This document shows, in pieces, positions 9,539-63,845 of a DNA stretch of 64,000 nt. The DNA lies in NCBI RefSeq assembly GCF_902652985.1, contig NC_047022.1, positions 22,754,001 to 22,818,000 on the forward strand, in the 5' to 3' direction. Source of the DNA: Pecten maximus (taxonomy: Eukaryota). The stretch's first letter is position 1. Every line of letters begins with the position of its first letter. Made by a program: the position numbers and the translations under genes. The notes under the pieces were generated by a model. It saw only the letters and a list, made by a program, of their open reading frames with translations. It was not told the origin of the DNA and ran no database searches.

Positions 9539-12101
9539 CTAGTATCTGCCACCTGTAGAAGAAAGGGTATCACCGTTATATATAAACAACGTATTTTCAT
9601 GTTCATAAATGCAACAAGCCCGATATACGAATGAAAAGTGCTGTGAAGCACTTGTAAATATTATTTTTGTTACATTTTTAATGCTTTCAAATTCATGTAA
9701 AGACAACATATCATAAACTCTTTTACGCCATCCGGATATTTGATTATATATGGTAAACTAAACCAATTTCCAAGGGTAATAACTCTGAAAATGAATATTG
9801 ATCATTATCGAAAGAGGCATCGTGCATACTAAGTAAATAAACTGTTATCAAATCACTATACCTTGAAGAGGTTTCGCACTTATGATACTGCACATATGAC
9901 AGTAATTGCAAATCGATATTTTACGTTCAACATAAGATCTGCCTATACAGAAAAGATGATAATTTCGAGGTACATTCTAATTGTGCATAAAAGAGCACTT
10001 GTCATATTGCTACCCGCGTATAAACATATAATACATTGCAATGAAATACAGTGGAAAAATAACTTACCCATTCCTCCGCCCATGCCTCCTTTTCCGCCCA
10101 TCATACCGCCCATGCCTCCCATACCAGGCATACCGCCCATACCTCCTCCCATGCCTCCTTTACCGCCCATCATACCGCCCATGCCGCCCATTCCTCCTTT
10201 TCCTCCCATCATACCGCCCATACCGCCCATTCCCATACCAGGCATACCGCCCATACCTCCTCCCATGCCTCCTTTACCGCCCATCATACCGCCCATACCG
10301 CCCATTCCCATACCAGGCATACCGCCCATTCCCATACCGCCCATTCCTTTTCCGCCCATACCGCCCATTCCCATACCGCCCATTCCTTTTCCGCCCATAC
10401 CTGGCATACCGCCCATTCCCATACCGCCCATTCCTTTTCCGCCCATTCCCATACCAGACATACCGCCCATTCCCATACCTTTTCCGCCCATTCCCATACC
10501 AGGCATACCGCCCATTCCCATACCGCCCATTCCTTTTCCGCCCATTCCCATACCAGGCATACCGCCCATACCCATACCGCCCATTCCTTTTCCGCCCATG
10601 CCGCCCATTCCCATACCAGGCATACCGCCCATTCCCATACCGCCCATTCCTTTTCCGCCCATACCGCCCATTCCCATACCGCCCATTCCCATACCAGGCA
10701 TACCGCCCATTCCACCCATTCCTCCGCCCATTCCTCCATAGGCAGCTGAAAGTAACAAATTAATAGATACAATAAAAAAAAAGAGTTGCATTTTCACATT
10801 TCATTTGGGCATTATAAACTTACCAAGAACCTACCTAACCATGAATTTATCTCTACATTTTGGTCTCCGCCAATAATTTTCGGGATTTATACTAAAACGG
10901 AATAGGGGATAGGGGATATGACGCCAACAGAACACTGACTATGGCTGAGACGAAACCTAACGATTGTTGGTGGTAAACCAGTCACTAAATAAATAACTAA
11001 TATATCATACAACGAATGAGTCAATACACCAATGTTTACACACCCTTTTCTGATAATTTGATTCGATAGTTACTCTTAATCAAATAGGGTTTGTGATTTT
11101 CAACTTTTATTTAATTGCCAATGGCTACTTACCGCGCTTGTAACCTGGAAATAAAAGGAAAAGTATCAGCCAACGTGCTTTAACGTTACAATCTATCTTC
11201 ATCTAGAAGGTAATGTCATGTTACACAATGGAATGATTGCATATGAATATAACAATTATCAAATATATTCATTTTGCTTTAACACTTTCCCCATTAACGT
11301 TATATGATTCAATGAAGTTTCTATTCTTATGCTGATAGTTTAGACCGATTTGTGCATTTGTGTTAACCAACATGTTGTAAAACAGATTACACCTTGATTT
11401 TATCTCATTATGTGACGTACGTACGTTTTTCGAAAATCTTTTAATTTTTATTGAGCGGACCGCAATACTCTACTGGAAAAATTATCTGCATACATGTATA
11501 TGGAATTGATACTTACGTCCACCGTTGTTCATTCCATTGCCATTGTTCATTCCGTAACCATTGTTCATTCCGTAACCATTGTTCATTCCATAACCATTGT
11601 TCATTCCATATCCTAATATCAATTGAAAATATATTTTAACAAATATTGTATACACATTTCGTATGTTATGCTTAATATTTTAGCAGTAAAATGATGTAAA
11701 TTGTATTGAACTTAAAAAAACAAAAACAATTGTACATCGAGGTATTTTATAGATTCCTTGGTAACTATTGGCGGGGCTTGTTCATTATAATTGATATGTT
11801 TATTATATTGACTCTTTTTATTTATTATGATAGATTTCTATATACATTCTTTATCGAATCAGTTCTAAAGATATTTTAACCGTGTTTATAGAAACCCGAA
11901 ACCTTTTTCATACTTCTTTCATTTCAGTGATATAAAAATGGACATGACGGACTGAAGATGCATTGAAACCAGTACAGGGAGCATCAGACCAACCAAAAAG
12001 ACATACCATGATACATACTATCAACCATATCTAATCCACTTACCAGCAGCGTTGGCAGCGACAACAATGGCGGACGCCATGCATACGAACAGAAAAGTCA
12101 T
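9539..12101 (-). CDS. Gene A: secreted Gly/Met-rich abductin-like precursor, 285 aa, 5 coding exons
   Basis: Coding exons 12101-12044 (signal MTFLFVCMASAIVVAANAA), 11612-11517 (GYGMNN repeats), 11144-11133 (microexon, RYKR), 10745-10068 (GGMGMGGMPGM/GGKGM repeats), 9552-9539 (GGRY stop). All introns GT-AG and phase 1; 858 nt in total; AATAAA at 9489-9484; non-coding exon 1 ends at donor 13942. Confidence 0.88.
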
Positions 12102-13079
12102 CTTGAAGGTCTACGAGATAAAAAAAATCATATTTCAATTTGATTTGGGAACATCAATATGCAATATATATGGTAAAAATGTAAAAATAATAATTAAACA
12201 CTACAAACATTACGTATATGTATCTACGAAAGAAATCCGTATCTCAGCAAAACTGCATAGATAATTCAGATAATTATATTGATAAGACCATGATAGCAAT
12301 TGGATCAGTATCATTTCGACTCTTCTAATCACTCCATATATTATTGAACCGGTCTCTTCCCAAATGTACATTTCATAATAATACTTGTAGGTAGATAGTA
12401 AAGTTTGAAGAATGTTTCGTGTTGAAAACTGTAATCTCTTACTTCTAAACATTAGGTTTTTTTAAAAAGAGATTTGAATAGAAATGGATCCGGTATAAAA
12501 TAGGAATATCTTCACGCCGTACACTGGCAAATATAACATTTTGATACATGTCAGCTTGATTTTTTTGAATGAATTCAGTACCACTCAGGAAACATGATAT
12601 AAAGCAATGCATTTGATAAATATTATATCGAGTTATGAAAATATCTTGCAGTGCTATTTCTGTACCGTCAAGCGTGAATGAAAAAAACAGCCTCTATGAT
12701 ATATTGAAAACAGAAAATCATATAAAACTATGCATTCTAGAATATCAACACTAGCTGCCGAATGGCTTTTGTTGTTTGTTTTACATTTCCACAATACAGT
12801 ATTTGCTCTGAAGTCAAAGTTATCAACTAAAATTACTAAAAATCAATTAGAGCAGGACATGGCCATATGAACGATTTCCACCTGGAAAATTAAGGTTTCC
12901 GTGATCAATCATAGCGCTATGTTAATTTCAAATCAAGAGGGAAATTTCCGAACGGTTTCGCCTGACGAGACTTGTAACTATAAGCCCGTTTGGTAGACAC
13001 GATTAAAATGCATCACTAGCCGAAAGGTGGTGATAAAGAAAATATAACTTTCTGTTTGGCTTTTACTACATAATTTTAC

Positions 13080-13390
13080 AATTATTAGTTGCACTTCTTT
13101 TATATACCACTCTATCACAGCAACGTAGTTGTCTAAAAGCGGTTCAAGTAGTATTATCCGTGGTTATTGGGCCTTTAGCGACCAGCCAATGTCTTTCTCA
13201 ACTCCCTGGGGAGCATACCGCCGGAGCTGCCATTTTGGCGCTAACAGTTTACATACAACATTAATTGCACTACCCTACCACGTATTCATTGACTGCTGAA
13301 TCGACTGGAACACAATGGAGTTAAGTATCTTGCTCAAGGATACAACACAGCGTCCGTGTCGGCACTCGAACTAGCGACCGTTCAGTGCCT
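13080..13390 (-). mobile_element. tRNA-derived SINE (Meta/Deu-like core), 5'-truncated, in intron 1 of gene A
   Basis: B-box-like GTTCGAGT, core TGTATCCTTGAGCAAGATACTTAAC, GTATGCTCCCCAGGGAGTTGAG, LINE-like tail; family assignment from recall only. Confidence 0.6.
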
Positions 13391-13404
13391 CCGTATAAAT
13401 AACT

Positions 13405-19477: not shown

Positions 19478-22400
19478 CGATATAAAGTCAGGTGCTTGTT
19501 GATATCTATTTCCTTATGCGATATGGAGTCAGATGTTTGTTTATATCTATTTCCTGATGTGATATAAAGTCAGATGTTTGTTGATATCTATTTCCTTATG
19601 CGATATAAAGTCAGATGTTTGTTGATATTCTATTTCCTTATGTGATATAAAGTTAAATACTTGTTGATATCCTATTTCCTTATGCGATATAAAGTCAGAT
19701 GCTTGTTGATATTCTATTCCTTATGTGATATAAAGTCAGATGTTTGTTGATATCCTATTTCCTTATGTGATGTTAAGTCAGATGTTTGTTGACATTCTAT
19801 TTCCTTGTAAGATATAAAGTCAGATGTTTGTTGATATTTATTTCCTTATGTGATATAAAGTCAGATGTTTGTTGATATCTATTTCCTTATGTGATATTAA
19901 GTCAGATGTTTGTTGATATCTATTTCCTTATGTGATATGAAGTTATATGCTTGTTGATATCTATTTCCTTATGTGATATGAAGTCAGATACTTGTTGATA
20001 TCTATTTCCTTATGCGATATAAAGTCAGATGTTTGTTTATATTCTATTTCCTTATGCGATATAAAGTCAGGTGCTTGTTGATATCTATTTCCTTATGTGA
20101 TATAAAGTCAGGTGCTTGTTGATATCTATTTCCTTATGTGATATAAAGTCAGATGTTTGTTGATATCTATTTCCTTATGCGATATGAAGTCAGATGTTTG
20201 TTGATATTCTATTACCTTATGTGATATAAAGTCAGATGTTTGTTGATATCTATTTCCTTATGTGATATAAAGTAAGATGTTTGTTGATATTCTATTTCCT
20301 TATGCGATATAAAGTCAGATGTTTGTTGACATTCTATTTACTTATGTGATATAAAGTCAGATGTTTGTTGACATTCTATTTCCTTATGCGATATAAAGTC
20401 AGATGTTTGTTGACATTCTATTTCCTTATGTGATATAAAGTCAGATGTTTGTTGATATCTATTTCCTTATGCGATATAAAGTCAGATGTTTGTTGACATT
20501 CTATTTCCTTATGCGATATAAAGTCAGATGTTTGTTGATATCTATTTCCTTATGCGATATAAAGTCAGGTGCTTGTTGATATCTATTTCCTTATGTGATA
20601 TAAAGTCAGATGTTTGTTGATATCTATTTCCTTATGCGATATGAAGTCAGATGTTTGTTGATATTCTATTACCTTATGCGATATGAAGTGAGATACTTGT
20701 TGATATCTATTTCCTTATGTGATATAAAGTCAGATGTTTGTTGATATCTATTTCCTTATGCGATATAAAGTCAGATGTTTGTTGACATTCTATTTCCTTA
20801 TGCGATATAAAGTCAGATGTTTGTTGATATCTATTTCCTTATGCGATATAAAGTCAGGTGCTTGTTGATATCTATTTCCTTATGTGATATAAAGTCAGAT
20901 GTTTGTTGATATCTATTTCCTTATGCGATATGAAGTCAGATGTTTGTTGATATTCTATTACCTTATGTGATATAAAGTCAGATGTTTGTTGATATCTATT
21001 TCCTTATGTGATATAAAGTAAGCTGTTTGTTGATATTCTATTTCCTTATGCGATATAAAGTCAGATGTTTGTTGACATTCTATTTACTTATGTGATATAA
21101 AGTCAGATGTTTGTTGATATCTATTTCCTTATGCGATATGAAGTCAGATGTTTGTTGATATCTATTTCCTTATGTGATATAAAGTCAGATGTTTGTTGAT
21201 ATCTATTTCCTTATGCGATATAAAGTCAGATGTTTGTTGACATTCTATTTCCTTATGCGATATAAAGTCAGATGTTTGTTGATATCTATTTCCTTATGCG
21301 ATATAAAGTCAGATGTTTGTTGATATTCTATTTCCTTATGTGATATAAAGTTAAATACTTGTTGATATCCTATTTCCTTATGCGATATAAAGTCAGATGC
21401 TTGTTGATATTCTATTTCCTTATGTGATATAAAGTCAGATGTTTGTTGATATCCTATTTCCTTATGTGATATTAAGTCAGATGTTTGTTGACATTCTATT
21501 TCCTTGTAAGATATAAAGTCAGATGTTTGTTGATATTTATTTCCTTATGTGATATAAAGTCAGATGTTTGTTGATATCTATTTCCTTATGTGATATAAAG
21601 TCAGATGTTTGTTGATATCTATTTCCTTATGTGATATTAAGTCAGATGTTTGTTGACATTCTATTTACTTATGAGATATAAAGTCAGATGCTTGTTGACA
21701 TTCTATTTCCTTATGTGATATGAAGTCAGATGTTTGTTGATATCTATTTCCTTATGCGATATAAAGTCAGATGTTTGTTGATATTCTATTTCCTTATGTG
21801 ATATAAAGTTAAATACTTGTTGATATCCTATTTCCTTATGCGATATAAAGTCAGATGCTTGTTGATATTCTATTCCTTATGTGATATAAAGTCAGATGTT
21901 TGTTGATATCCTATTTCCTTATGTGATGTTAAGTCAGATGTTTGTTGACATTCTATTTCCTTGTAAGATATAAAGTCAGATGTTTGTTGATATTTATTTC
22001 CTTATGTGATATAAAGTCAGATGTTTGTTGATATCTATTTCCTTATGTGATATTAAGTCAGATGTTTGTTGACATTCTATTTACTTATGAGATATAAAGT
22101 AAGATGTTTGTTGATATTCTATTTCCTTATGTGATATAAAGTCAGATGTTTGTTGATATTCTATTTACTTATGAGATATGAAGTAAGATGTTTGTTGATA
22201 TCTATTTACTTATGAGATATAAAGTCAGATGCTTGTTGACATTCTATTTCCTTATGTGATATGAAGTCAGATGTTTGTTGATATCTATTTCCTTGTAAGA
22301 TATAAAGTCAGATGTTTGTTGATATTCTATTTCCTTATGCGATATAAAGCCAGGTGCTTGTTGATATTCTATTTCCTTATGTGATATGAAATCATATGTT

Positions 22401-22820
22401 TGTTTATATATATTTACTTATGTGATATAAAGTCATATGTTTGTTGATATCTATTTCCTTATACGATATAAAGTCAGATGCTTGTTGATATCTATTTCCT
22501 TATGCGATATGAAGTCAGATGTTTGTTGATATCTATTTCCTTATGCGATATGAAGTCAGATGTTTGTTGATATCTATTTCCTTATGCGATATGAAGTCAG
22601 ATGTTTGTTGATATCTATTTCCTTATGTGATATAAAGTCAGATGTTTGTTGATATCTATTTCCTTATGCGATATAAAGTCAGATGTTTGTTGATATCTAT
22701 TTCATTATGTGATATAAAGTCAGATGTTTGTTGATATCTATTTACTTATGCGATATGAAGTTAAATACTTGTTTATATCTATTTCCTTATGCGATATAAA
22801 GTCAGATGTTTGTTGATATG
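19478..22820. repeat. 41/42-bp satellite array, ~80 copies
   Basis: Unit GATATAAAGTCAGATGTTTGTTGATATCTATTTCCTTATGY; begins ~240 bp downstream of the gene B polyA signal. Confidence 0.96.
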
Positions 22821-23113
22821 CCCAGTTGATCCATTGTCACTGTCAAAACTCCCATTTGAGATTGTGGTTATTACCCGAATTTGACGTAGGAGTATTTTGA
22901 AAGTTTCGTCTTCATTGAATTGAATTATGATTTCGTTATTATGTCGACATTCTTTGATCAGGGTTATTTGTTATGGTGGTAATTAAATTGGCCTTCAGCC
23001 TTGGTATTTGTAATATTTCTTATAACAAAGACAACAGTTGAATGCAATAGTCAATTTTTAATAGTAGTGTAACATATACATGTCATTTGGAGAAAGCAGA
23101 ATCAGCCGGAGAT

Positions 23114-24601
23114 TTAGTATCCTGAAACATAATGGTTGTACATGGATTAGTAATTAGAAATACTATACACATAAACGTCAGAACTATCCCTAGATATTTG
23201 AGATAAAGAAATACTAATTGTAGACAGCCCTTATCAATACATGAGGTTGAGGAAGCCCAATGTTTTATGCATTCGGTAGCTAGGTAAAGTATATCAAAAT
23301 GTAATGTTGTATTCGAAATACTTCACGATTTCTTTTAATATGATAAATACTTGAGTGATATCGAAGTCTTGCCAGCATGCAATTTTGCTACATATATCTA
23401 TTTTTAATGTGGAATGAACTTTTCAAAGATGTAGGGATAACTGCTTCTTGAATGCATGCTTAGTGAAATATGTACACGAAAATTTTAACTCTTTGTGAAA
23501 TAAGACCATATATAAAAATGACATATTTACCTTTTCCTCCAAATCCACCTTGGCCGCCCATTCCTCCGCCCATTCCTCCGCCCATTCCTCCAAAACCTCC
23601 ATTACCACCGCCCATTCCTCCGAAGCCACCTTTTCCACCGCCCATTCCTCCGAAGCCACCCTGGCCTCCCATTCCACCGCCGTTCATTCCACCGCCGTTC
23701 ATTCCTCCGCCGTTCATTCCTCCGAATCCTCCTTGGCCTCCCATTCCACCTCCCATTCCTCCGAAGCCACCTTTTCCTCCTCCCATTCCTCCGAAGCCAC
23801 CCTGGCCTCCCATTCCGCCGCCCATTCCTCCGAATCCACCCATTCCTCCGAATCCACCTTTACCCCCGCCCATTCCTCCGCCCATACCTCCGGCTCCGCC
23901 TCCGTTCATTCCTCCGCCCATACCTCCGGCTCCGCCTCCGTTCATTCCTCCTCCCATTCCAGTACCGCCCATACTTCCGGCACCGCCTCCATACCCTGTG
24001 AAATACAGATAAACAGATGTATTAATCAATAGATGTTACATATTAATTATGATACTTTTTAATGATGTGGCGTAAGTGGTATGGTCAATGCTTTACATCA
24101 GAACAGATTGATTTTTCATATTCATATTGCTTTAGCACAAGAAACATCTTTATTTGAAAACATTTACGACCAACTTTGTTTGCAAGAGTTTTTCTTGTGT
24201 TATATGTCCAACTACGTTCCCATAGCAGTGCAAATTCCTTTTCGACAAGGGATCGAGGGATATTACTAGTCAGACTCGATTACATGCCCTAGTGCCATTT
24301 CTCTCCGCTAGGCTGCGCTGATGAAGATAAATATCAGATCGCAGCCAAGCGGAAAGTAGAAACACCTCGACTGACTACCCAGTATATGTTACAAGTTTGT
24401 ACTTCCATATTGAATTCGTATATATAGAGCTTCGCGTCATACCTATGCTTAATTTAAGAAAGAAGAAAGAAACGGATTCATCACGACTGTTCAGGACATA
24501 TATGTTCAGGACAGTACAGTTTAGGACACAGATGTTTAGGACAAACCTGCAGCACTGACGGCGGCAACAAGACAAACGGCAAGACAGATGTAGGTGTTCA
24601 T
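23114..24601 (-). CDS. Gene B: canonical abductin (scallop hinge-ligament elastomer), 175 aa, 3 coding exons
   Basis: Exons 24601-24547 (MNTYICLAVCLVAAVSAA), 23995-23531 (GYGGGAGSMGGTGMGGGMN...GGFGGMGGG repeats...GGQGGFGGK), 23121-23114 (GY stop); 528 nt; ATTAAA at 23062-23057. Matches my recollection of Argopecten abductin (MNAYICLAACLIAAVSAAGYGGGAGSMGGTGG...GGQGGFGGKGY). Confidence 0.93.
24268..24377. mobile_element. Small palindromic MITE-like insert in intron 2 of gene B
   Basis: Ends TAGTCAGACTCGA / TCGACTGACTA with an internal GC-rich hairpin TCCGCT-A-GGCTGCG-CTGAT...ATCAG-AT-CGCAGCC-A-AGCGGA. Confidence 0.5.
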
Positions 24602-25392
24602 CTTGAGGATGATCTGTGGACAAATAAATCAATAAACTCAATACATTTGATGGTTTTATTCTATTTTAGCATACTTAAAGTTTAGCATAAAGCCGAATTT
24701 ATTAACAGATTAGCACAATGATGAATTACGCTCACAGTACTAGCTGTTGAAAACTATATACCGAAATATCGCAATCATAATTTATCGGGAAATGTTTTCA
24801 GCGCAAATTGCGCGAAAATAAGGTAACCGCTAAAATATGTTCACTTACAGTACTGTAAGAAGTTCAAGAAACCTAACAATTGTATCTTCCAGATAGCTAT
24901 TGTTTTTTGTAGACAGAACTATCTAGACTCTACAGTTTAAGCTTTTTGTGAAGTTTAGCACTACATGTTGCCTAGAGGCTGATTTATAATTGTTTTCCAT
25001 ACATATACTGTACTGGAATTTGAAATGGTGAATCATAAAAATGGCGACATTAAGTAAAACGTTTAACAAATTTAGTTACGTCACTTCGTTTTGCTGCATT
25101 CTATATATTGTTTAGAATAAATGTCATGTTGCTGTAGGAAATACGTGTGAAATCTTGAAGAATATACTAGCTTATGCTAAAGCTTAATATAGATACTGTA
25201 TAAATCGTCATTTCGTTCTTGATGTAACCACTATACTACTAGCATACGCCTAAATCTCATGTGTATGAACACATCAGAACAAATATGAACTTAAAAGATG
25301 ATACTAAAGAATATCAGGGTATCTGAGGAGACTAAGTTGTCATTAGCCCTTACTAAGTTATACATATAGGAACACCGAAGAAGTAAGCTTAC

Positions 25393-25500
25393 CTGGTAGA
25401 TCAGGAGAGGATATCAGCTGGTGGTTGAAGGTTCTAGGAAGCTGTGGTGATTTCTAACCTGTTAGATAGCCACTATTTATACAGTTTGTAACGGAAATCT
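25393..25500 (-). promoter_or_regulatory. Gene B core promoter and non-coding exon 1
   Basis: Minus strand AGATTTCCGT-TACAAAC-TGTATAAATAG (25500-25473); donor CAG|GTAAGC at 25393/25392. Confidence 0.78.
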
Positions 25501-26494
25501 GGTCACCACAAATATGTAAGAGAAACACATCATCGATTGATAACATAATTTACATCCTTTTAAAATCGTCGCATTTTGTTTTAACTTCTTTAATGTCGAC
25601 ATTGGAATCTGTTAAGATGTCTATATTACATGTTAACTGCACGTGTAAACACAGCACGTACCTGAGAATGTGCACTGCGCTTTGAAGATGTCGATTGCAT
25701 TGGCTTGTTTTCTGTACGTGCTAGTTTAGTGTTATCGAGGATAAACACAATGTAGGGCTGACTTTGAATTCACAGTGTTAAAGAATAAAGGAGGCACGTG
25801 TTTTGCAAATTTTAAAGTGATTATTTTTAGGTTGTTGATTTTTGTTGTTGTTGTTGTCGTAAAAGTTCAATAATACGTTCAATTTTTTGTATTATTTTAG
25901 TATTTTTCATTTCTTTACACTTATAATATACTCCAGGGACGGATAGCATTTTGTTACTATTCTCAACTTAGATCTTTTCATTGCAAGACATCATTTTGAT
26001 ATTTAAATTCAATTTATGCATGGTTATCTATTAGTTTCCAAACTATCCAAAACACTACTCTCAAATTTACTATTATGTCTAAAAGAATATTTTTTGTTTA
26101 TTAAAAACAACAAAGATTACAGACATAACAATGGAACCATAATTCGTGGATAAGGCTATATAATCAGGGGATATACTTAATTTCAAATAATTTTCGTCCG
26201 TGTGTCTTCTGCTTGGGACACATTGAAAGACAATAGTTCTCGAAAGCCTGTTAAATAATGTACATGTAGTTGAATCGGTGATATAGAATTTGTATTTATA
26301 AAAATTACCCAAGTTTCAATTCAGTTGTATTTTACGTAAAACCTATTTCTGATATAAAAAAAACTTCAGATCTATCGAATTGTTTTAATTTGGAATAACA
26401 TTTACAAGTTATTGTATAAAAGATATTTTAAAAGTATGACTCTTGTGATATAGTTGAAGAAACGTGACTCGGTATTATAATAGGTTTAGTAGGG

Positions 26495-28172
26495 GTAGAG
26501 TCGTAGGTAAAGTAGTAGGTAAAGTAGTAGATAAAGTATTAGGTAAAGCAGTAGGTAAAGTAGCAGATAAAGTAGAAGATAAAATGGTAGGTAAAGTATT
26601 AGGTAAAGTAGTAGGTAAAATAATAGGTAAAGTAGAGGTAGAGTAGTAGGTAAAGTAGTAGGTAAAGTAAAGGTAACTTAGTAGGTAAAGTAGTAGGTAA
26701 AGTAATAGGTAAAGTAGAGGTAGAGTAGTAGGTAATGTAGCAGGTAAAGTAGTAGGTAAAGTAGAAGTAAAGTAGTAGGTAAATATGGTAGGTAAAGTAG
26801 AGGTAAAAGTAGTAGGTAGAGTAGTAGGTAAAGTAGTAGGTAAAGTAGTAGGTAAAGTAGAGGTAAAGTAGTAGGTAAAGTAGAGGTAAAGTAGTAGGTA
26901 AAGTAGAGGTAAAGTAGAGGTAAAGTAGAGGTAAAGTAGTAGGTAAAGTAGAGGTAGAGTAGTAGGTAAAGTAGTAGGTAAAGTAGTAGGTAAAGTAGAA
27001 GTAAAGTAGTAGGTAAAGTAGTAGGTAAAGTAGTAGGTAAAGTAGTAGGTAAATAATAGGTAAAGTAGTAGGTAAAGTAGTAGGTAAAATAATAGGTAAA
27101 GTAGTAGGTAAAATAATAGGTAAAGTAGTAGGTAAAGTAGTAGGTAAAGTAGTAGGTAAAGTAAAGGTAACTTAGTAGGTAAAGTAGTAGGTAAAGTAAT
27201 AGGTAAAGTAGAGGTAGAGTAGTAGGTAATGTAGCAGGTAAAGTAGTAGGTAAAGTAGTAGGTAAAGTAAAGGTAACTTAGTAGGTAAAGTAGTAGGTAA
27301 AGTAATAGGTAAAGTAGAGGTAGAGTAGTAGGTAATGTAGCAGGTAAAGTAGTAGGTAAAGTAGAAGTAAAGTAGTAGGTAAAGTGGTAGGTAAAGTAGA
27401 GGTAAAGTAGTAGGTAAAGTAATAGGTAAAGTAGAGGTAGAGTAGTAGGTAATGTAGCAGGTAAAGTAGTAGGTAAAGTAGAAGTAAATTAGTAGGTAAA
27501 GTAGAGGTAAAGTAGCAGGTAAAGTAGTAGGTAAAGTAGAGGTAAAGTAGAGGTAAAGTAGTAGGTAAAGTAATAGGTAAAGTAGAGGTAGAGTAGTAGG
27601 TAATGTAGTAGGTAAAGTAGTAGGTAAAGTAGAAGTAAAGTAGTAGGTAAAGTAGAGGTAAAGTAGCAGGTAAAGTAGTAGGTAAAGTAGTAGGTAAAGT
27701 AGTAGGTAAAGTAGTAGGTTAAGTAGTAGGTAAAGTAGTAGAGGTAAAGTAGTAGGTAAAGTAGTAGGTAAAGTAGAGGTAAAGTAGAGGTAAAGTAGTA
27801 GGTAAAGAAGAAGGTAAAGTAGTAGAGGTAAATTAGAAGATAAAGTAGTAGGTAAAGTAGAAGTAAAGTAGTAGGTAAAGTAGAGGTAAAGTAGCAGGTA
27901 AAGTAGTAGGTAAAGTAGTAGGTAAAGTAGTAGGTAAAGTAGTAGGTTAAGTAGCAGGTAAAGTAGTAGAGGTAAATTAGAAGATAAAGTAGTAGGTAAA
28001 GTAGAGGTAAAGTAGAGATAAAGTAGTAGGTAAAGTAGAGTTAAAGTAGTAATTAAGTAGTAGGTAGAGTAGTAGGTAAAGTAGTAGGTAAAGTAGTAGG
28101 TAAAGTAGTAGGTAAAGTAGTAGGTAAAGTAGTAGGTAAAGTAGAGTTAAAGTAGTAATTAAGTAGTAGGTA
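26495..28172. repeat. 1.7-kb AGTAGTAGGTAA (12-mer) / AGTAGAGGTAA (11-mer) simple-repeat array
   Basis: Direct reading; the plus strand has almost no C; lies between the divergent promoters of B and C. Confidence 0.96.
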
Positions 28173-29407
28173 GCTCTTTTTTATTATAATAGATCCATTT
28201 ATGTATCATTATAGCAGAATATACTATTTTGCCTGTTAATGTTCTTAAGATGCCATGAAAATGTAATAAAACTAGTTATACCTGAATGCTATCTCTTTGA
28301 GATGATGGATGACTATAACATACACATATATATACATTTATAAGAAACTTTGATGTTATTACAAGCATTTCACGTCCGGTAGTGACATTAGAAACAGAAG
28401 ACAACAAAACAGGGAGAACAGACAGATAAGAAGGAAAATTCACAAAAAATGTTTTTTATGCTTTCTTTATACCAGGGACATACATTGTTTGTACGTCCCT
28501 GTTTATACCATGTAAAATATATGATGTGCTGATTAATTTAGGAGATTGCTGAGTTTGCATATGTATACTTGTATTATGGAAAGGACATTGGTTAGTTGTG
28601 ATAACTTTCGTCCGACGAACCATTGTTTAAAGTTTATGCAATAAAATTGATTTAAATTTTTTATTTAAATTATAAATATGAACAAATTATGCGAGAGGAC
28701 ATTTGGACTTTTGTCAAAAAGAAAAAAAAGGAAAAAAAGATATTGAATACTGAATACGGTATTTAATTCATGCGACACATTAAACTAAAAGCTAACCTAT
28801 TAATTTATCATGATTGTGCTCAAAACTCATGAATACATTTGATTTGAAATTTTATCCAGCAGTTAATATAGTCATATCAATTGAAGATGCTACTTCACCG
28901 ACAAATAACTATGATCACGTGAAAAAAAGAAAAGGTTGTTATATATTTTATACAATGTCACAAGTGACATGCTTTCTACTGTTACCACCATCCTACAATT
29001 AAATCTTCTTTTATCTTTTAATCAGCAATTCATTGTACTCAGAATTTTTTTTGCTATGCTTCTATATTTTGTAAGTAAGTACGGGTTATTCTTATAAGTA
29101 GTCATTATAACTATATTTTGCCGTTTTGTTGTATCAATTAGGTAAAATTATTCACGCTGTGTTCCATTCTATTTGTTTAGAATAAGATGTAATAGACGGT
29201 CATTAATGTCAAAACGAGGTAACGATGGCCACATTAGGGAAACTAATGGGTTTAACGACCGTCTTGTACATGTGGCTGCTGTTAGATAAAAGTTTGAGCT
29301 AGGCCATTTATAGAAACTGTGACTATTTAGTGTTCAATACAGGGAAATGTGGATGTTTTACAGTTGTGCATGATCTGACCTTGCTATTTCAATGACCCTG
29401 CATTTAC

Positions 29408-29503
29408 AGACTTCCGTCTCGCACTGTATAAATAGAAGTTGTATCCATTCATTCACCGCACCACGTCTCCAGTTACTCACCCTTTGTCTTCTCGTCCAGT
29501 CCG
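29408..29503 (+). promoter_or_regulatory. Gene C core promoter and non-coding exon 1
   Basis: AGACTTCCGT-CTCGCAC-TGTATAAATAG (29408-29435), Inr-like CATTC, donor CCG|GTGAGT at 29503/29504. Confidence 0.8.
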
Positions 29504-30587
29504 GTGAGTGTTTATATTGGTCTTCGTTCGTTGTCTTACTACAACGTATAGATGATGTTTAATAAGCAAAAAGCTGATAGAATATTATTATTGCAATTAT
29601 ATGGAATCATGGACAGGGTATGGCAGCCATATATTGCCGCTTTGTCCATATTCGATTTATCTTGTGTCCAGAATATTTTATAGACAGAATAAACATAAAC
29701 AGAAAGAACTGATTCAAGATTGGTTTTCGTATGCACGTAAAATTGTATATTTAAACGTTGTTAAATCGAATTTTACGGCACCCGTGAAAATAATTTTTCA
29801 TGACCAAAATCCGTTATATATATATATACAAATGTATATTTTTTCCATCTGGACTATGTTCCGACTCCGCCTTCTAACTAAGCCTTTATCAACACACAAT
29901 CACAGATATTGTACATGTTACAAAAACGTTGATAGACCATATAAATGTACATTTTTATACTTAATGAAAGTAATGTATTATCTTGGCGTGTTTTAATATG
30001 TTTTTTTTTCTTAATATGACGCGACATGCTTCTGAACATTATTTATAGTTTAGCACAGAAATTCATGCAGTTTTATGACACATTTAAGAGTAGTTTATTA
30101 TTTAATGAAACAATCCAAATATCTTGAGACAACGAAGGAAAGTAACCATGGAAATGATATGTTCTGCAGTAGTTGGGTTGAACATCTTGCACATTGTAGT
30201 GGATTTTTTTTGAACTATATTTTAACATTTTTTGAAGACAGTGCTTTCGTCTATATCTGGTTAACTATGTATGTACTACGTAAACATGAAATACTAATTG
30301 AATTAACCTGAATTTTACGCTTCAGTGATTTGTTCAAGATAATTATAATGGTGACAGACGTTCGAATTCAGAAATATTTTTCATTTTTTGTTTTGTTTCA
30401 TTATGTGAAATACTAACATGTGGAGCTAAATTGATGGTGCTTTCAGAAATTAGCATGATATCCATGCAGTACTCGATTAGGTATTGTGTATTATGATTAA
30501 ACTAGAAGAAACGTCCTGATATTTTTTTATTGATATCAACATCAATATCATATGAAGTGCCGTCTCCATTTCAGAAGAAACCCCACA

Positions 30588-40775: not shown

Positions 40776-40871
40776 AGACTTCCGTCTCGCACTGTATAAA
40801 TAGAAGTTGTATCCATTCATTCACCGCACCACGTCTCCAGTTACTCACCCTTTGTCTTCTCGTCCAGTCCG
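40776..40871 (+). promoter_or_regulatory. Gene D core promoter and non-coding exon 1
   Basis: AGACTTCCGT-CTCGCAC-TGTATAAATAG; donor at 40871/40872. Confidence 0.8.
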
Positions 40872-43650: not shown

Positions 43651-46600
43651 ATGACCTGCTTGTCCCTTTGCTATTTTACATAATCATAATGTAGATACAA
43701 ATAAAACATTTAAATATTCCATTTTCTTGTTTGTATATATTTATTCTTATCGAACATAGATGAATCTTAATTTCTGTATGTTCGAGTACAACAAATTAAA
43801 AATACAGTGAAACGTATCAAGAACAACTTCAACTCCCTGTGTAATTTAACTCCTAGTACAAAAGGCGAGGATTGCTCTAGAGTGTTCTCTGACGTTTTTT
43901 ATTGACGGTAATTCCATTTCCATCTTAACTTCCATCTCAATGTCGCTACTTATCTGACTTGGAGAAGTTGAAATTATTAAGGAAGATCCTTTTTCGATGG
44001 GAGACGAAAAAAACGCATTGTCATTCTTTGACCTCTTCTTCGCGAGCGATTTAACATTGGTGTTGACTTGTTCAGTTTCTTTGGACCAGGATATTGTGGG
44101 CGAGGATGGTGATGGACAATCATGTAAAGCCAGGAAGTAAATGCTTTGTTTTCTTTTAAAAAAAAGGTGTCGTTTTGTTAGCTGTAATTCATAAGTACCC
44201 CTGCTTCAACGGATTCAAAAGGAAATCCACCGGTTCACCATCCAGTCAGTTCCTTTTTCAACTTACCCCTTCTGCATAATCTATTCACAATTTTGAGTAT
44301 TGTGTTATGATAACTGCCAGGACTAATATTACATAAAATGGTCAAGTCTATTCTGCCAAACTTTGGTTAGTAAATAAGCATAAAGAATGGCAAGATATAA
44401 CTTTAAGAAAGATACAATGAAGTTGCGACGAAAATATCTCAATTATTGAATATATCTATTTAGAAACTTTTATTAGAAAATAGTTCTGTCTTCACTTCAA
44501 AATTAACCGTGAACGCCCCTTTTGTAAATTGATATGCATTCTATGACAATACTTAACCGTAAGCATTTGTGGAGGAGAGCATTAGAGAGTAATCTGGGTT
44601 TTATAACGCCCCCTTAAATCCTGACCGGTAAGAACACCTCAGACTTATGTCTCTTGTTTGGATAAGTTAGATATATAGTAACAAGATTAACGAGTTTAAA
44701 AGGATACTGGATCATATCATTGAAATAAGATTCCCTACATTGTTTAGCTTTGGTGCGTTACATTGCGTATCTAACATGGCAATGTGGCATTGTTTTACTG
44801 TGCAAAGTTAAACGTGAATATGTCAGGATTAGTTGGTGTGGCAGTTTGTATCAAGCTGAATAGCTTGCTGGCAACTGTACAACCCCTTCTCTGTCATGGG
44901 TATCAATTAATCTGATTCGGATAATGGCTACATAGGCTCATCATCTAATCAATTGATCAATAGACCAGGCTATTGAGACCAAAGAAATGAGACCAGACCA
45001 GACCAGACCAGACCAAACCAGACCAGACCAGACTATGTTTTAAAGTATGCCTTTAAATGTCTTTTCAAAAGCAGATTTAGGCATGATACAGTATATGCTA
45101 ATATAGGTGTTTAGTCCTTCTAGGATTCTTTAGTTATTATCAAAAGTGGCAATCCAGATCGCGAATCAGGAAAATCAAAATCGGCCGAAAAAATCTTTAA
45201 AATATAGCAGAGTAAATGTATTAACTTGGCATGTTAATCAATGGCATATTTATCGATATTTATAAAGGAACATATTTGGCTATTCTGAAGAAAAAAAATA
45301 CAGAAAGAATCATTTTGCTTTTTAACAGATGTATTTGATATTCATTAAAGTTCTTTTCACAATAATCGTGACATCCTACTGGACATAAACATTTAGTAAT
45401 TCATCAAAATCATGGATTTACAAACATCATGCATTGGGTTCCTGGGTCTCGGGATTGAACAGATACATGTATATGTTGCTGAATCTGTTAAGACTTGACA
45501 TTAAGATTATTTATTTTGACAGGGTTTATCTTACTCTATCGATATATATTCGTCTTGTCTATTGGCTATTGTCTATAAGGTTATTGACCTTATCCTTTCG
45601 CATCAATGGCTTTTTATAATTCCAATATATTGATAAGTGCGAACTAGAATAGAATTTGTGTTTAAAAATTCTGATACATGTATATGCTATTGATGACTTC
45701 AGACATTTAAGAACAGATAAGGGAATATTTTTCACAAAAGTGATTAATTAAAATGGACAAAACAATTACTGATGTTTGTTCTTAGGAAACACAAGTAATT
45801 GACACAGTATTCAAGAATAAATAGATTAGTAATAGATGGTAAAAAGCATCGTCTATGGACGGAAAAATGTACACAAATCTTTTTAAAGCGCTAATTCGAC
45901 CTTATATAGAATCAACTGAAAGTGTTTGGAGTCCATAGAAAATAGGACATTGAAAGTATAGAGAGCGTTCAAAGAAGAAGACTATTAGAAACTTCCAACT
46001 CTAGCATGTAGGCGCGTTGATAAATGGGCTTTATGATCCGAATTTAGTGGATTGTTCGATATTGCCACCACAAGGGGAAAATCGGGGACAGAGTATAAAC
46101 AAGGTTAAACAACATTGTCATTTAAATATTAGTAATCATTAATTTACTCAACGAATAATTCATAACTGAAATTCTCCTATCAGATGTTATTTCATCTCGT
46201 AATGTTATTTAACTTTGAGAAAAAACTTTTTGGAAACATCTGAAAGTTGGTCATTCAGCTTTTTGTATAAAGGCTTATAAATTTATGTTTTCTAAACTGA
46301 ATTTCATATAGTTCATGGAAATATACATCGTATATTGATGTCGAGTCCATTTATTTCCTATTAAATCCCATTGATATATGTTAAATGATATATTCGTCTA
46401 CAATGTTCAACAGTTTCGTCCACCTAAAATGTGGCCTTCTGTAAGAGTGTCTATAAGAATAATGTTCAGCAATTTTGGAAGAAAACGGATTTACACAATT
46501 TTCAATAAATATTGATATTGAATAATTTTTAAACAACAGCAAATATGTGAAAAAATCTTAAATGTTGTCGCTAATACAATTACACACAAGGTTCGACTTT

Positions 46601-51121: not shown

Positions 51122-51217
51122 AGACTTCCGTCTCGCACTGTATAAATAGAAGTTGTATCCATTCATTCACCGCACCACGGCTCCAGTTACTCACCCTTTG
51201 TCTTCTCGTCCAGTCCG
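51122..51217 (+). promoter_or_regulatory. Gene E core promoter and non-coding exon 1
   Basis: AGACTTCCGT-CTCGCAC-TGTATAAATAG; donor at 51217/51218. Confidence 0.8.
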
Positions 51218-52331
51218 GTGAGTGTTTATATTGGTCTTCGTTCGTTGTCTTACTACAACGTACAAATGATGTTTAATTAACAAAAAGCTTATTAGAATAT
51301 TATTATTGCAATTATATGGAATCATGGACAGGGTATGGCAGCCATATATTGCCGCTTTGTCCATATTCGATTTATCTTGTGTCCAGCCAGAATATTTTAT
51401 AGATAGAATTATAATAAACAGAAAGAACTAATTCAAGATTGTTTTTCGCATGCACGTAAAATGATATAGTTAAACGTTGTTAAATCGAATTTTACGGCAC
51501 CCGTGAAAATAATTTTCCATGACCAAAATCCGTTATATATATATATATATTTTTTTAATTTTTCCATCTGGACTATGTTCCGACCCCGCCTTCTAACTAG
51601 GCCTATATCAACACACAATCACATATATTGTACATGTTACAAAAACGGTGATAGATTCATTTTAAGAACAAATCAGACCATATAAATGTACATTTTTTAT
51701 ACTTAATGAAAGTAATCTATTATCTTGGCGTGTTTTAATATTTTTTTTGTCTTAATATGACGCGACATGCTTCTGAACACTATTTATAGTTTAGCACAGA
51801 AATTGATGCAGTTTTATGACACATTTCAGAGTAGTATATTATTTAATGAAACAATCAAAATATCTTGAGACAACGAAGGAAAGTAACCATGGAAATAATA
51901 TGTTCTGCAGTAGTTGGGATTGAACGGTCTGCACATTGTAGTGGATTTTTTTTATTTGAACTATATTTTACCTTTTTTTGAAGACAGTGCTTTCGTCTAT
52001 ATCTGGTTTACTATGTATGTACTACGTAAACATGAAATAGTAATTGAATTAACCTGAATTTTACGCTTCAGTGATTTGTTCAAGATAATTATAATGGTGA
52101 CAGACGTTCGGATTCAGAAATATTTTACATTTTTTGTTTTGTTTCATTATGTGAAATACTAACATGTGGAGCTAAATTGATGGTGCTTTCAGAAATGAGC
52201 ATGATATCCAGTACTCGATTAGGTATTGTTGTGTATTATGATTTAACTAGAAGAAACGTCCTGATATTTTTATTGATATCAACATCTTATATCATATGAA
52301 GTGCGGTCTCCATTTCAGAAGAAACCCCACA

Positions 52332-54190
52332 ATGAACACCTACATCTGTCTGGCTTCATGCCTTTTGGTGGCCGTGAGCGCTGCAGGTAAATCGTGCAAT
52401 ACAGCAAACCGAACCTAATATCAATCTTTTTAACATTATTTGAAACATATTCTTATATCAATGTATTACTAGTAACTCACTTTGAAGAATTCATGAATTA
52501 TCATTAAGACTTAGCGATTGTAAATGTCAATGCACAAATATTTTTGACAGTACAAATAACATATATGACTGTGTTGCTCGAACTGTACGGCGGAGAGTTC
52601 TCATCTAGAATTGGCTATGGACCCATGTATACTATACTATACTTATCTGTAAGTTTACCAATACTCCGTATCATGAGCTGATTGTGAAAACGGAAGTGAT
52701 TTTGGGATCTTTTGTTTTTCTCGGGTTTGTGGTTAAGAATTATCTACAGATATTATGTATACCTACATGACATATCAGTTTATTGTACATGTGTAATCTA
52801 ATACGTGTATCTTTGACAGGTTATGGAAGTGGATCCGGAAATGGATTTGGTAATGGCGGCGGAAATGGATTCGGAAACGGAAACGGTTACGGAAACGGCA
52901 ATGGCGCCGGAAATGGAGGATTTGGATTTGGACGTGAGTGTGAATTGAATAGATTGCAGAAGTGAATAATATGTTTTGTGAAGAATAACATATCGTAAGA
53001 TCGATAAACTAGTATATATATTTAAAGATATGTTTATGTTAGTGAATGCTTCAGCCGATATTATAAGTAACAGAATTTGCATATCACACTTGAAGCTACC
53101 TGGGTATCTAACAAGATTTATGGTATATATATTATATTATATTTATTATATTAATATATATTAATCTATATTTTGTTTATGAGAATTTAGATTTACTCTG
53201 ATCGGATTGAATTTTGAAGTTGAATTGAAGTTTAAAAAAAGTTTTTGGTGCAAATTATCAAAAAATATCAACGCTAATTTTGTTCTTTTATTTCAGGATA
53301 TAGAAGAGCAGGTGGGTATCAACGATTTTCATGTCGTTTGTTTCCTTTTGTCGATTGAAATTAGTTTTTCCCTATATGTAATTATAGATATGATATTATT
53401 ATGTGTCAAAATCAAGAACCTTCTGATCGAAGTGTGTACTTAGAATTAACAAATGACTCCACTGAAATGAAGGTTATAGTAGTATATTACTGTTGAAACT
53501 ATTGTTCAATGATACATACGATATCAGCTCATTTATCTACTATCAATATAAATGTTTACCCTAGGATACGGAGGTGGTGCCGGAAGTATGGGCGGAGGAT
53601 TTGGTGGCTCTGGAATGGGAGGAAAAGGTGGATTCGGAGGAATGAACGGCGGAGGAATGAACGGCGGTGGATTCGGAGGAATGAACGGCGGTGGAATGGG
53701 AGGAATGAACGGCGGTGGAATGGGAGGAATGAACGGCGGTGGAATGGGAGGCAAAGGAGGATTCGGAGGAATGAACGGCGGAGGATTCGGAGGAATGAAC
53801 GGAGGCGGATTCGGAGGAATGAACGGCGGTGGAATGGGAGGCAAAGGAGGATTCGGAGGAATGAACGGCGGTGGATTCGGAGGAATGAACGGAGGCGGAT
53901 TCGGAGGAATGAACGGCGGTGGAATGGGAGGTGGAATGGGCGGTGGAAAAGGTAGTTACATAATTGTCGGTTTTTTATTATCCACGTTGGGCGTTTCTCC
54001 CGGTTCTATTATGAAATAGTTGTGATATGATTTAATTATACTATTTTTAATAATACTTCGATATTATATTATTCCTGATGATAAATTATCGTGCTTTGAA
54101 CATTTTGTAAATGATAAAACGCACTTATTATATTTGACTTGTGTATTGAATTCTAACCAGGTATGCCTTGTTTTGCTTCCAGGATATTAG
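52332..54190 (+). CDS. Gene E: pro-abductin-like precursor, 192 aa
   Basis: Exons 52332-52386, 52820-52933, 53297-53311, 53565-53951, 54183-54190; 579 nt, intact. Confidence 0.9.
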
Positions 54191-55562
54191 ATGACCTGCT
54201 TGTCCCTTTGCTATTTTACATAATCATAATGTAGATACAAATAAAATATTTAAATATTCCATTTTCTTGTTTGTATATGTTTATTTTTATCGAACATAGA
54301 TGAATCTTTATTTCCGTATGTTCGAGTACAACAAATTAAAAATACAGTGAAACGTATCATGAACAACTTGATAATTCGATGTCCCTGTGTAATTTAGCTC
54401 CTAGTACAATAGGCGAGGATTGCTCTAGAGTGTTCTCTGACGTTTTTTATTGACGGTAATTCCATTTCCATCTTAACTTCCATCTCAATGTCGCTACTTA
54501 TCTGACTTGGAGAAGTTGAAATTATTAGGGAAGATCCTTTTTCGATGGGAGACGAAAAAAACGCATTGTCATTCTTTGACCTCTTCCTCGCGAGCGATTT
54601 AACATTGGTGTTGACTTGTTCAGTTTCTTTGGACCAGGATATTGTGGGCGAGGATAGTGATGGACAATCATGTAAAGCCAGGAAGTAAATGCTTTGTTTT
54701 CTTTTAAAAATAAAAAGTGTCGTTTTGTTAGTTGTAATTCATAAGTACCCCTGCTTCAACGGATTCAAAAGAAAATCCACCGGCTCACCATCCAGTCAGT
54801 TCCCTTTTTCAACTTACCCCTTCTGCATAATCTATTCGCAATTTTGAGTATTGTGTTATGATAACTGCCAGGACTAATATTACATAAAATGGTCAAGTCT
54901 ATTCTGCCAAACTTTGGTTAGTAAATAAGCATAAAGAATGGCAAGATATAACTTTAAGAAAGAGAAAATGAAGTTGCGACGAAAATATCTCAATTATTGA
55001 ATATATCTATTTAGAAACTTTTATTAGAAAATAGTTCTGTCTTCACTTCAAAATTAACCGCGAACGCCCCTTTTGTCAATTGATATGCATTCTATGACAA
55101 TACTTAACCGTAAGCATTTGTGGAGGAGAACATTAGAGAGTAATCTGGGTTTTATAACGCCCCCTTAAATCCTGACCGGTAAGAACACCTCAGTCTTATG
55201 TCTCTTGTTTGGATAAGTTAGATATATAGTAACAAGATTAACGAGTTTAAAAGGATACTGGATCATATTATTGAAATAAGATTCCCTACATTGTTTAGCT
55301 TTGGTGCGTTACATTGCGTATCTAACATGGCATTGTGGCATTGTTTTACTGTGCAAAGTTAAACGTGAATGTGTCGGGATTAATTGGTGTGGCAGTTTGT
55401 ATCAAGCTGAATAGCTTATTGCAACTGTAGTCCCTTCTCTGTTATGGGGTATCAATTAATTTATTCGGATAATGGCTACATAGGCTCATCAGCTTGATTT
55501 GTTGTGAAGAAATTTTCTAATCAATTGATCAATAGACCAGGCTTTTGAGACCAAAGAAATGA

Positions 55563-61514: not shown

Positions 61515-61618
61515 AGACTTCCGTCTAAATTTGTATAAATAGAAGTTGTATCCATTCATTCATCGCACCACGTCTCCAGTTTCTCACCAATCGTCTTCTC
61601 GTCCAGTCCAACAAGCCG
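61515..61618 (+). promoter_or_regulatory. Gene F core promoter and non-coding exon 1
   Basis: AGACTTCCGT-CTAAATT-TGTATAAATAG; donor CCG|GTAAGC at 61618/61619. Confidence 0.8.
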
Positions 61619-62389
61619 GTAAGCGTATATAGATTGTTTCACTTTAAGGTACTGTAAAATCTAAAAATGAAAATATATAAATTATGAAATAATATAGGTG
61701 TAAATCTATTTGCTGTAAGGTATTAAAGGTATTTTATCATTTCTCATAGAGAACATCTTAAGAATCCATCTTTGTCTTTTAACTAGGATCTATAAGGATA
61801 TGTCCATGCGAACATCTTTCTGGGTTGATGATTCTAGTTGGTTTTGATCTTCTGGAACCATATTCTGAGTTTAAAGTGACTTCATTTCTCCTTTTTTTGT
61901 ATTTGGGAAACATATGTTAAAGAAAACTGTTTACGTCCATATCTTATAGAATATGAATTGAAGTGGAATTCTCACTTGACCTATGATTTACACTTCAGTG
62001 TCTTTGGCTTTAATTGTCATCTACCCAGGTAAACTCCATGGGCGATATAAATGATACTTAGATATTAATTTTGCAAGATTCTCAATGCAAATATACTTTG
62101 CCCTCATGTAATTGAGTTTAATCAGAATAACATTCCGTTTTAATGTTTGTAATTTTCTTTTGATTAAATGCTTTGTACTTGGTTTGGATGAAATATTATA
62201 TTACTTTTATATCATACTTACTCGATGTATTTGATATCTGAATAATGACATAAATTGCTGGTCTACGTGCCAAAGTTTGGAGAAGCTTTTCTTAATTTGT
62301 CATGGATATCGCAGTCATAATCAGCTTTTAAAACACTTTTTATTGATGATTTTATATACATGTTCTCTGTTGCAGAATAAAATCCCAGA

Positions 62390-63845
62390 ATGAACACCTA
62401 CATCTCTGTGTGTCTGGCTTCATGCCTTTTGGTGGCCGTGAGCGCTGCAGGTAAAATACTGAAACCTTTCCTAAAATAAAGATTTTATTTCATTTGTAAC
62501 ACACGTTTAATGACCTAATGAACATAATCTTGTATGTATTTACTCGTATTGACTTCATATTTCTGATTATGCAACTGTAAAATATTAACACTGATGCATG
62601 ATTGCAACTTTGTCCTTGAATATAACGATTCAAATGTTTAAGGACACCATTACCTGACCGATGAGCGAAATTTTCTTTTTCTTTTCTACCTTTATTAATG
62701 AGAAAATCTGATGTCATTTACTTAAAACACAATTTATCGTTTTAGTTTGAAGGTTTGTTCGAAATTAATATATATCTGGAAATATCAGGATATTTCCGAT
62801 CAGTAAATCATTCTGGACATTCTCAATATTCCCATGGCGATGGTATCCCATACTTGATGTACATGACATATTCAATTAAAGAATAACCTTAGTTAAGGAA
62901 CTTTTGTTAAACTCTGTAAAGAATATCGAAATTATATAAACATATCTTATATATCAATTTTAACTGAAATTTTATTACCAACGTGTCACTCAATACCTGT
63001 ATAACTGATAGGTTATGGAAGTGGATCCGGAAACGGATTTGGTAATGGCGGCGGAAATGGATATGGAAACGGTTACGGAAATGGCAATGGCGCCGGAAAT
63101 GGTGGATCTGGATTTGGACGTGAGTACTGTATAGTTACTATAATTAATTCCGAAAGTGTATTTTAGTGGGCGTTTCAACGAATACTATCGGTACACAAGG
63201 TTTCATCCTCCTGATACTTTCTATGGAATTTTAAATATATTCTTTATTTATAATTTGTCCTCGCTTTACTGATTTAGAGTTTGATGTTAAATCTATCGGT
63301 TTTTGATTATGTATATTAAAAATATTTCTCTTGCTGTTTTATTTTAGGGTATAGAAGAGCAGGAGGAGGTGGGTACTAAAACTTCTCCATACTGATTGAT
63401 TTCTTTTGTCAATAGAAATGTTTTTCTTTATTTCGGATTAAACAACATATAAATAAGATTTATATTAATCAACTATATTCCGGTAGAAACGTGTAATTCG
63501 AAATAATCTATATCTTGATTTTCAATATAAAATGACTTGTTTGGTATATCAATTCTGAAATATGTTTTAACCTAGGATACGAAGGTGGTGCAGGAAGTAT
63601 GGGCGGAGGTTTTAGTGGCTCAGGAATGGGAGGCAAAGGTGGATTTGGAGGCATGAACGGAGGTGGATTCGGAGGAATGAACGGAGGCGGATTCGGAGGA
63701 ATGAACGGCGGTGGAATGGGAGGCAAAGGTGGATTCGGAGGCATGAACGGAGGTGGATTTGGAGGCATGAACGGAGGTGGATTTGGAGGAATGAACGGAG
63801 GTGGATTTGGAGGAATGAACGGAGGTGGAATGGGAGGTGGAAAAG
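62390..63845 (+). CDS. Gene F: pro-abductin-like precursor, 3'-partial (last exon expected beyond the window)
   Basis: Exons 62390-62450 (MNTYISVCLASCLLVAVSAA), 63012-63119 (Gly-Asn peptide), 63348-63368 (RYRRAGG microexon), 63576-63845 (GYEGGAGSMGGGFSG...GGK); introns do not align with those of C-E. Confidence 0.87.

Follow-up and report, generated by a model that had tools for sequence, protein, structure and literature searches.

Among natural protein rubbers, abductin alone is documented as working in compression, and synthetic elastomers have been modelled on it. As late as 2025, reviews based their account of it on one 1997 Argopecten cDNA, which encodes a single 136-residue product. 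According to these reviews, the first 19–20 residues are Ala-rich and contain Tyr4, Cys6, Cys10 and Tyr20; the Gly/Met domain consists of GGFGGMGGGX units with about 58–60% Gly, 1% Pro and few Lys; and a third conserved Tyr is found at the C-terminal extremity. The cross-links are unknown, and an older proposal places Tyr-based links at the chain extremities. Here we analysed a window of 64,000 nucleotides (nt) of Pecten maximus DNA (scaffold C8:22,754,001–22,818,000; coordinates with the prefix C8 refer to this scaffold, the others to the window), which carries six Gly/Met-rich genes, A to F. The explanation that we consider likely is that the window and its downstream flank hold the abductin locus of P. 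maximus, a tandem family of eleven genes over ∼113 kb, whose products would comprise several co-secreted classes, convertase-cut precursors among them, end-linked through Tyr.

Some other systems resemble the family in part. Elastin and resilin are likewise entropic rubbers of disordered Gly-rich chains, in which the regularly placed cross-linking residue is Lys for elastin and Tyr for resilin; they are unrelated in sequence and origin, and abductin differs in working in compression. Pteriomorph bivalves have shematrins and further Gly-rich proteins of the shell matrix, which combine a signal peptide, XGnX-type Gly repeats and a C-terminus with basic residues and Tyr, as in the present family. 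These belong to the shell framework, not the ligament, and are not known to have a Met-centred repeat. LMP of Pinctada is a Met-rich, low-complexity, insoluble framework protein of the hinge ligament; it works within an aragonite-fibre ligament, whereas the core of the scallop resilium is described as rubber-like.

The window is free of N bases. In its six-frame list of open reading frames (ORFs), long Gly/Met-rich stretches were found at 9943–10797 and 23460–24029 on the minus strand and at 31802–32272, 43050–43538, 53552–54019 and 63599–63907 on the plus strand, and the exon boundaries of A–F were set by script after reading the flanks of these ORFs. An initial annotation, made from the letters alone, had placed six Gly/Met-rich genes between 9539 and 63845, with A and B facing left and C–F facing right. 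All six big exons were found at the proposed coordinates; position 9539 is the last base of the stop codon of A and 63845 the last base of the big exon of F, and the gene models put A and B on the minus strand and C–F on the plus strand. Overall, the data support the view that A–F are genuine abductin-type genes, spliced and paralogous to one another.

The likeness to abductin is seen in gene B (23057–25496, minus strand), the canonical abductin-type member without a pro-region. It has Tyr4, Cys6, Cys10 and Tyr20 in the signal region, GGFGGMGGGX repeats with six exact GGFGGMGGG units, ∼60% Gly, almost no Pro, few Lys and a C-terminal Tyr, in agreement with the proposal that B matches abductin; it is longer, with 175 codons versus 136 residues. 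The four Tyr and Cys residues lie at exactly these positions in B–E; in F an insert of 2 residues displaces them, and they were not found in A, whose signal peptide differs. The exact GGFGGMGGG unit occurs once in C and is absent from D, E and F, each of which contains 7–8 copies of the one-residue-longer GGFGGMNGGG; A has neither the GGFGGMGGG unit nor any Phe. In line with the initial annotation, C–F are Asn-containing variants that have a pro-region, and A is a Phe-free Met/Pro/Lys form. The big exons of B–F have 61–67% Gly, 12–15% Met and 0% Pro, and the big exon of A (225 codons) has 58% Gly, 32% Met, 5% Lys, 4% Pro and 0 Phe. Throughout the family the repeat exons contain 58–67% Gly and regularly spaced Lys, and in the six window genes Met recurs every few residues. 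The Lys residues lie 13–47 residues apart, always just before a new superrepeat, which matches a 90-nt period in the DNA (Tandem Repeats Finder). In composition, A (32% Met) resembles Pinctada LMP.

Database searches were run exon by exon. Pfam gave no family on any exon of A–F and no match in the other window ORFs of at least 80 codons, so that no unrelated gene was detected between the family members; a tRNA scan found none. A phmmer-type search with the big exon of B returned nothing at E 0.001 and nothing at E 10; such blanks say nothing on novelty, because the bias filters of HMMER discard sequences of this kind. The ESM Atlas yielded no usable match. AlphaFold2 modelled the repeat exon of B with a predicted local distance difference test (pLDDT) score of 45 and no secondary structure, which is compatible with a disordered random-coil elastomer, though not decisive. 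The idea of a polyproline-II bundle is cited in a published paper (PMC12571646); the AlphaFold2 model of B does not reproduce it, and a single-sequence model cannot exclude it.

The six genes are part of a larger cluster. A genome search with genes C and A, together with 224 kb read around the window, revealed five further family genes (G–K) downstream of F, past the right end of the window, so the annotated six-gene cluster stands for the window and the whole locus has eleven genes. The proposal of three sequence classes was not supported as stated: the locus shows at least five classes among these eleven genes. A degenerate pattern for the signal exon, MNTYxCL[AT], has 8 matches in the assembly of 918 Mb, every one of them within this locus, and a reversed control gave 0. 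Genes F and G were missed by this pattern solely through a two-codon insert in the signal exon. The signal exon of A is 51–58% identical to the other family signal exons, and A is counted as a member because of its position and the common exon architecture. Defined by its non-low-complexity signal exon, the family is therefore confined to one locus of ∼113 kb. The repeat exon of A has weak DNA matches (65–71% identity) to Gly/Met-type repeats at C9:43675150–43675821, C4:2590519–2593088, C12:17347071–17347488 and C16:8813930–8815744; because all of these are without an MNTY signal exon they were set outside the family, and they are either separate families or compositional look-alikes.

The gene architecture is shared to a large extent. 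All junctions in A–F are GT–AG, all coding introns are in phase 1, and each signal exon ends with Ala-Ala plus one G ahead of the GT donor. The annotated AA-G ends, phase-1 introns and single large Gly/Met exon were reproduced in all six genes. The coding sequences of A, B, C, D and E measure 858, 528, 585, 540 and 579 nt, are all divisible by 3 and contain no internal stop. The coding part of B comprises the signal exon, a single big exon and, as its last piece, 8 nt that give Gly-Tyr-stop. C–F have two added exons between the signal exon and the big exon, the first of 108–114 nt and rich in Gly, Asn, Tyr and Phe, the second of 15 nt (C–E) or 21 nt (F), which together with the preceding split codon spells R-Y-R-R-A. 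The layout of A is like that of C–F with different content, namely a GYGMNN-repeat exon, a 12-nt exon that completes R-Y-K-R, and a 678-nt big exon; its last exon gives Gly-Gly-Arg-Tyr-stop. The last coding piece, including the stop, is 8 nt in B–E and 14 nt in A and ends in Gly-Tyr-stop or Arg-Tyr-stop, and the tiny Tyr-bearing last exon predicted for the five complete genes was indeed present in A–E with intact frames. An AATAAA or ATTAAA lies 50–52 nt after the stop in all five, a spacing that provides independent support for the tiny terminal exons. In the locus as a whole, 11 of 11 genes (A–K) derive the C-terminal Tyr from a separate last microexon. The measured microexons of 8, 12, 14, 15 and 21 nt agree with the annotated range of 8–21 nt.

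Upstream of B, C, D, E, F, G and K we found a promoter module, TTCCGT plus nine bases plus GTATAAATA, with the exon 1 donor 70–85 nt further on. Within 224 kb there are 7 occurrences of the pattern, all of them ahead of a family gene and on the correct strand, versus 1.2 expected from shuffles; in the same scan it was absent upstream of A, H, I and J. The RNA contig of the C-type exon 1 starts 32 nt after the TATA box. The TTCCG core resembles an ETS-type site. A non-coding exon 1 had been proposed for all six window genes; it is confirmed by RNA for the C type, while in B, D, E and F conservation of the TATA module and of the donor supports it, and for A no exon 1 was located.

Transcript evidence was obtained from contigs of two public runs of the same organism (X1 and X2), placed on window 28300–32700, the region of gene C. 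The run type (RNA) was a guess, but the precise removal of the introns shows that the contigs are transcript-derived. Four predicted junctions of the C, D and E type were recovered: at 29503|30575 (GT..AG ends) the signal exon follows directly on the non-coding exon 1, 30642|31070 joins the signal exon to the pro-exon, and the pro-exon continues via the 15-nt exon into the big exon, entered at 31815, which confirms both sides of the microexon. C-type joins are present in contigs of both runs; these contigs are not assignable among C, D and E, because the exons are 98–100% identical. One X1 contig has a pro-exon shorter by 6 nt and an 18-letter insert that matches the 21-nt exon of F, and so confirms this microexon too. 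A loose contig end at 32208, not contiguous in the genome, corresponds exactly to the end of the K big exon joined to the K exon encoding Gly-Gly-Gly-Tyr-stop, so the terminal-microexon design is transcript-confirmed for this family. J and K also account for further loose ends, and a piece of 11 nt occurs in B and nowhere else in the locus. Several classes (C type, J and K) are thus transcribed, and run X2, one sample with its tissue given in code, contains contigs of the C type, of J and of K plus the 11-nt hint of B. Among the 23 runs of the organism listed, no more than two contained at least a twentieth of the sampled words, which is compatible with tissue-restricted expression. Two runs of 2020 that belong to a single study, X2 and X3, contrast strongly: X2 is positive, and X3 gave almost no match. 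According to the P. maximus genome paper, two mantle samples were taken from the sequenced animal (PMC7191990); these may be X2 and X3, though this pairing is a guess.

Several observations weigh against the locus being an abductin locus with co-secreted products. B was likened to Argopecten abductin via published descriptions rather than by direct alignment, and its transcription is supported by 11 nt. Gene A lies outside the read coverage, has a different signal peptide and is without the promoter module. The last-exon join was not seen for A–E with reads laid on the gene C region, where the contigs are short; for C this counts against the model, though gaps prove nothing.

An alternative is that B alone makes ligament rubber and that the other classes, arisen by duplication of an abductin-like ancestor, are Gly-rich matrix proteins of other structures (shell framework, periostracum or byssus). 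Secreted Gly-rich families are numerous in bivalves, and further Gly-rich clusters exist in this genome; the compositions differ strongly, with Ser for Met in H–J and no Phe in A, and A, H, I and J lack the common module. However, C–G and K have both the promoter module and the signal exon of B, C–E and G would acquire the N-terminus of B after the putative cleavage, and contigs of several classes occur in one sample. On balance we think this alternative unlikely, and an abductin locus with several co-secreted classes is preferred.

Classes II (C–G) and III (A) are characterized by the two extra phase-1 exons between signal and repeat. The Gly/Asn/Tyr pro-region that they encode ends in the motif R-Y-K-R in A and R-Y-R-R in C–F and G. 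The sequence R-X-[KR]-R is the proprotein-convertase consensus. The motif R-Y-[KR]-R conforms to it, lies downstream of the signal peptide and is placed to release a defined N-terminus. Its first Arg is split across the splice junction and is encoded by CGA, CGT, CGG or AGA depending on the gene, which indicates constraint on the residue, not the codon. The residues after the motif in C–E and G, Ala-Gly-Tyr-Gly-Gly-Gly-Ala-Gly-Ser-Met, are almost identical to the post-signal N-terminus of B. We infer that a furin-type convertase would cut after R-Y-[KR]-R, because the Arg is conserved across codons and a B-like N-terminus would result. A pro-region and convertase motif are not reported for abductin in the reviews.

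In principle, the Gly/Asn/Tyr region could be a permanent N-terminal block and R-Y-[KR]-R a basic/Tyr cross-linking or binding site. Tyr and Phe are present in the region, which has the look of a Gly-rich structural block, and the predicted cleavage is drawn from the motif alone. The motif nevertheless fits the convertase consensus, is kept through synonymous and codon-family changes, and sits exactly where a cut restores the B-type N-terminus; we therefore regard a permanent block as improbable and favour a removable pro-region.

The models of the window genes are as follows. In A (9484–12110, minus strand), the Phe-free Gly/Met/Pro/Lys class with a pro-region, the signal exon is at 12044–12101 (acceptor 12110), the pro-exon at 11517–11612, the 12-nt exon at 11133–11144 and the big exon at 10068–10745; the last exon runs from 9552, the stop ends at 9539 and an AATAAA is at 9489–9484. 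In B the module TTCCGT-N9-TATAAATA is at 25496–25474 and a putative exon 1 at about 25449–25393, followed by the signal exon at 24547–24601 (acceptor 24614), the big exon at 23531–23995, the last piece at 23114–23121 and an ATTAAA at 23062–23057. C (29412–32510, plus strand) is the first of three near-identical pro-form genes, with the promoter module at 29412–29434, exon 1 at about 29459–29503, the signal exon at 30575–30642 (ATG at 30588), the pro-exon at 31070–31183, the 15-nt exon at 31547–31561, the big exon at 31815–32207, the last piece at 32448–32455 and an AATAAA at 32505–32510.

D (40780–43705, plus strand) is a tandem duplicate of C in which the repeat exon is shorter, with exons 98–100% and introns 92–98% identical to those of C; its promoter module (40780–40802) and exon 1 (together 40780–40871) are identical to those of C, and its signal coding sequence is at 41841–41895, the pro-exon at 42329–42442, the 15-nt exon at 42795–42809, the big exon at 43063–43410 and the last piece at 43643–43650. 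E (51126–54245, plus strand), the third tandem copy of the C type, has the module at 51126–51148, the exon 1 donor at 51217, the signal coding sequence at 52332–52386, the pro-exon at 52820–52933, the 15-nt exon at 53297–53311, the big exon at 53565–53951 and the last piece at 54183–54190. F (61519–63845, plus strand), a more diverged pro-form, is cut by the window end; its module is at 61519–61541, exon 1 at about 61566–61618 (donor after 61618), the signal coding sequence with a 2-codon insertion at 62390–62450, the pro-exon, shorter by 6 nt, at 63012–63119, the 21-nt exon at 63348–63368 and the big exon at 63576–63845. The Gly-Tyr-stop exon of F is at C8:22818087–22818094, 87–94 nt beyond the window end. 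A different exon 1 for F, at 62021–62030 with a donor resembling that of B, was ruled out by the promoter module and by homology to the RNA-confirmed exon 1 of C.

C, D and E form tandem units of 10.5–11.2 kb, with promoters and exons 98–100% identical and introns 92–99% identical. Their big exons of 393, 348 and 387 nt differ in repeat number, as is left by unequal crossing-over of recent date. F and G represent older copies, and the signal exons of B, K and H–J are 64–78% identical to the C type. That part of the family is non-functional, with C, D and E as assembly duplications or young pseudogenes, is very improbable: the three are 92–100% identical over 10–11 kb units and gene I has a 1-nt frame break, but the indels, the repeat-number differences and the intron differences of 4–8% among C, D and E far exceed those of haplotype copies, and their frames, splice sites, promoters and polyadenylation signals are all intact.

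The downstream genes G–K all carry the MNTY signal exon, the phase-1 layout and the terminal microexon with Tyr. G (C8:22833139–22834710, near 22.833 Mb) is the seventh gene and of the C type with a pro-region. H, I and J (minus strand; signal exons at C8:22841509, 22853884 and 22866398) form a Gly/Ser/Phe class, with only ∼3% Met in the repeat exons and Ser in place of Met. K (C8:22876611–22873924, near 22.875 Mb) is a Gly/Met/Pro/Phe gene. The frame of the big exon of I is broken by one extra A in a GGA-GGA-AGT context at about C8:22853040–22853090, which points either to a young pseudogene or to a mistake at a homopolymer in the long-read assembly. At C8:22844062–22844358 (plus strand) there are pieces like the C-type pro-exon (87% identity) and the region of the 15-nt exon (28 of 28 bases); no signal exon or big exon was found near them, and they are probably the relic of a partial duplication.

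Farther downstream, ∼80 kb past the window, an uninterrupted ORF of 541 codons with MGGMMGGMPMGGMKP-like repeats lies at C8:22898541–22900163 (plus strand). It is extremely Met-rich, and its Met/Gly/Pro composition, like that of A, resembles Pinctada LMP. A search with its 541 residues gave only compositional noise (FliN, scramblase), the HMMER filters removing sequences of this kind. Another Gly/Met ORF, at C8:22915707–22915934, abuts a 100-N assembly gap. In the window the genes are also flanked by large satellite arrays: a 41-nt unit repeated ∼81 times at 19479–22819, starting ∼240 nt past the polyadenylation signal of B; a 12-nt unit repeated ∼142 times at 26494–28172, between B and C, which explains a spike in GC skew; a 27-nt unit repeated ∼34 times at 7376–8305; and a 49-nt array at the left edge (69–469).

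Taken as an abductin locus, the eleven small genes would encode secreted, disordered, Gly-rich chains of the type of the inner hinge ligament rubber. The signal-peptide exon would direct secretion, and a convertase would remove the Gly/Asn/Tyr pro-region in classes II and III, after which every mature chain would have a Tyr near the N-terminus and a Tyr as the last residue, in keeping with the older proposal of Tyr-based links at the chain ends. The mantle epithelium that forms the ligament would secrete several classes together, with the common TTCCGT-N9-TATA module driving their expression, and the chains may be end-linked via the terminal Tyr, perhaps also via Lys and Met, into an entropic elastomer with properties that depend on the class mixture. 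A further reading, which we offer tentatively and hold to be possible rather than likely, is that the hinge rubber is a designed multi-component network, with at least five classes from one co-regulated locus secreted together, a pro-region that keeps the convertase-activated precursors soluble up to their release, end-linking through Tyr, and a class mixture that determines how long the chains are and which side-chain chemistry (Met, Asn, Pro, Ser, Phe) they have.

Neither the cluster nor a gene family, propeptide or gene structure of abductin was found described in the literature searched, with subscription literature outside the search. Some of the family genes may already exist as unnamed models in public annotation; in the P. 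maximus genome paper the words 'ligament' and 'glycine' are absent (PMC7191990). Where the literature knows a single product, the locus described here holds eleven genes in at least five classes. The complete locus opens the questions of which classes are in the resilium, whether terminal Tyr residues end-link the chains and whether the propeptide controls assembly, and it also raises that of how stiffness and resilience depend on the Met, Asn, Pro or Ser variants. Anchors that are not of low complexity, namely the signal exon, the promoter module and the microexons, make it possible to follow the family in other bivalve genomes, where searches with the repeats fail.

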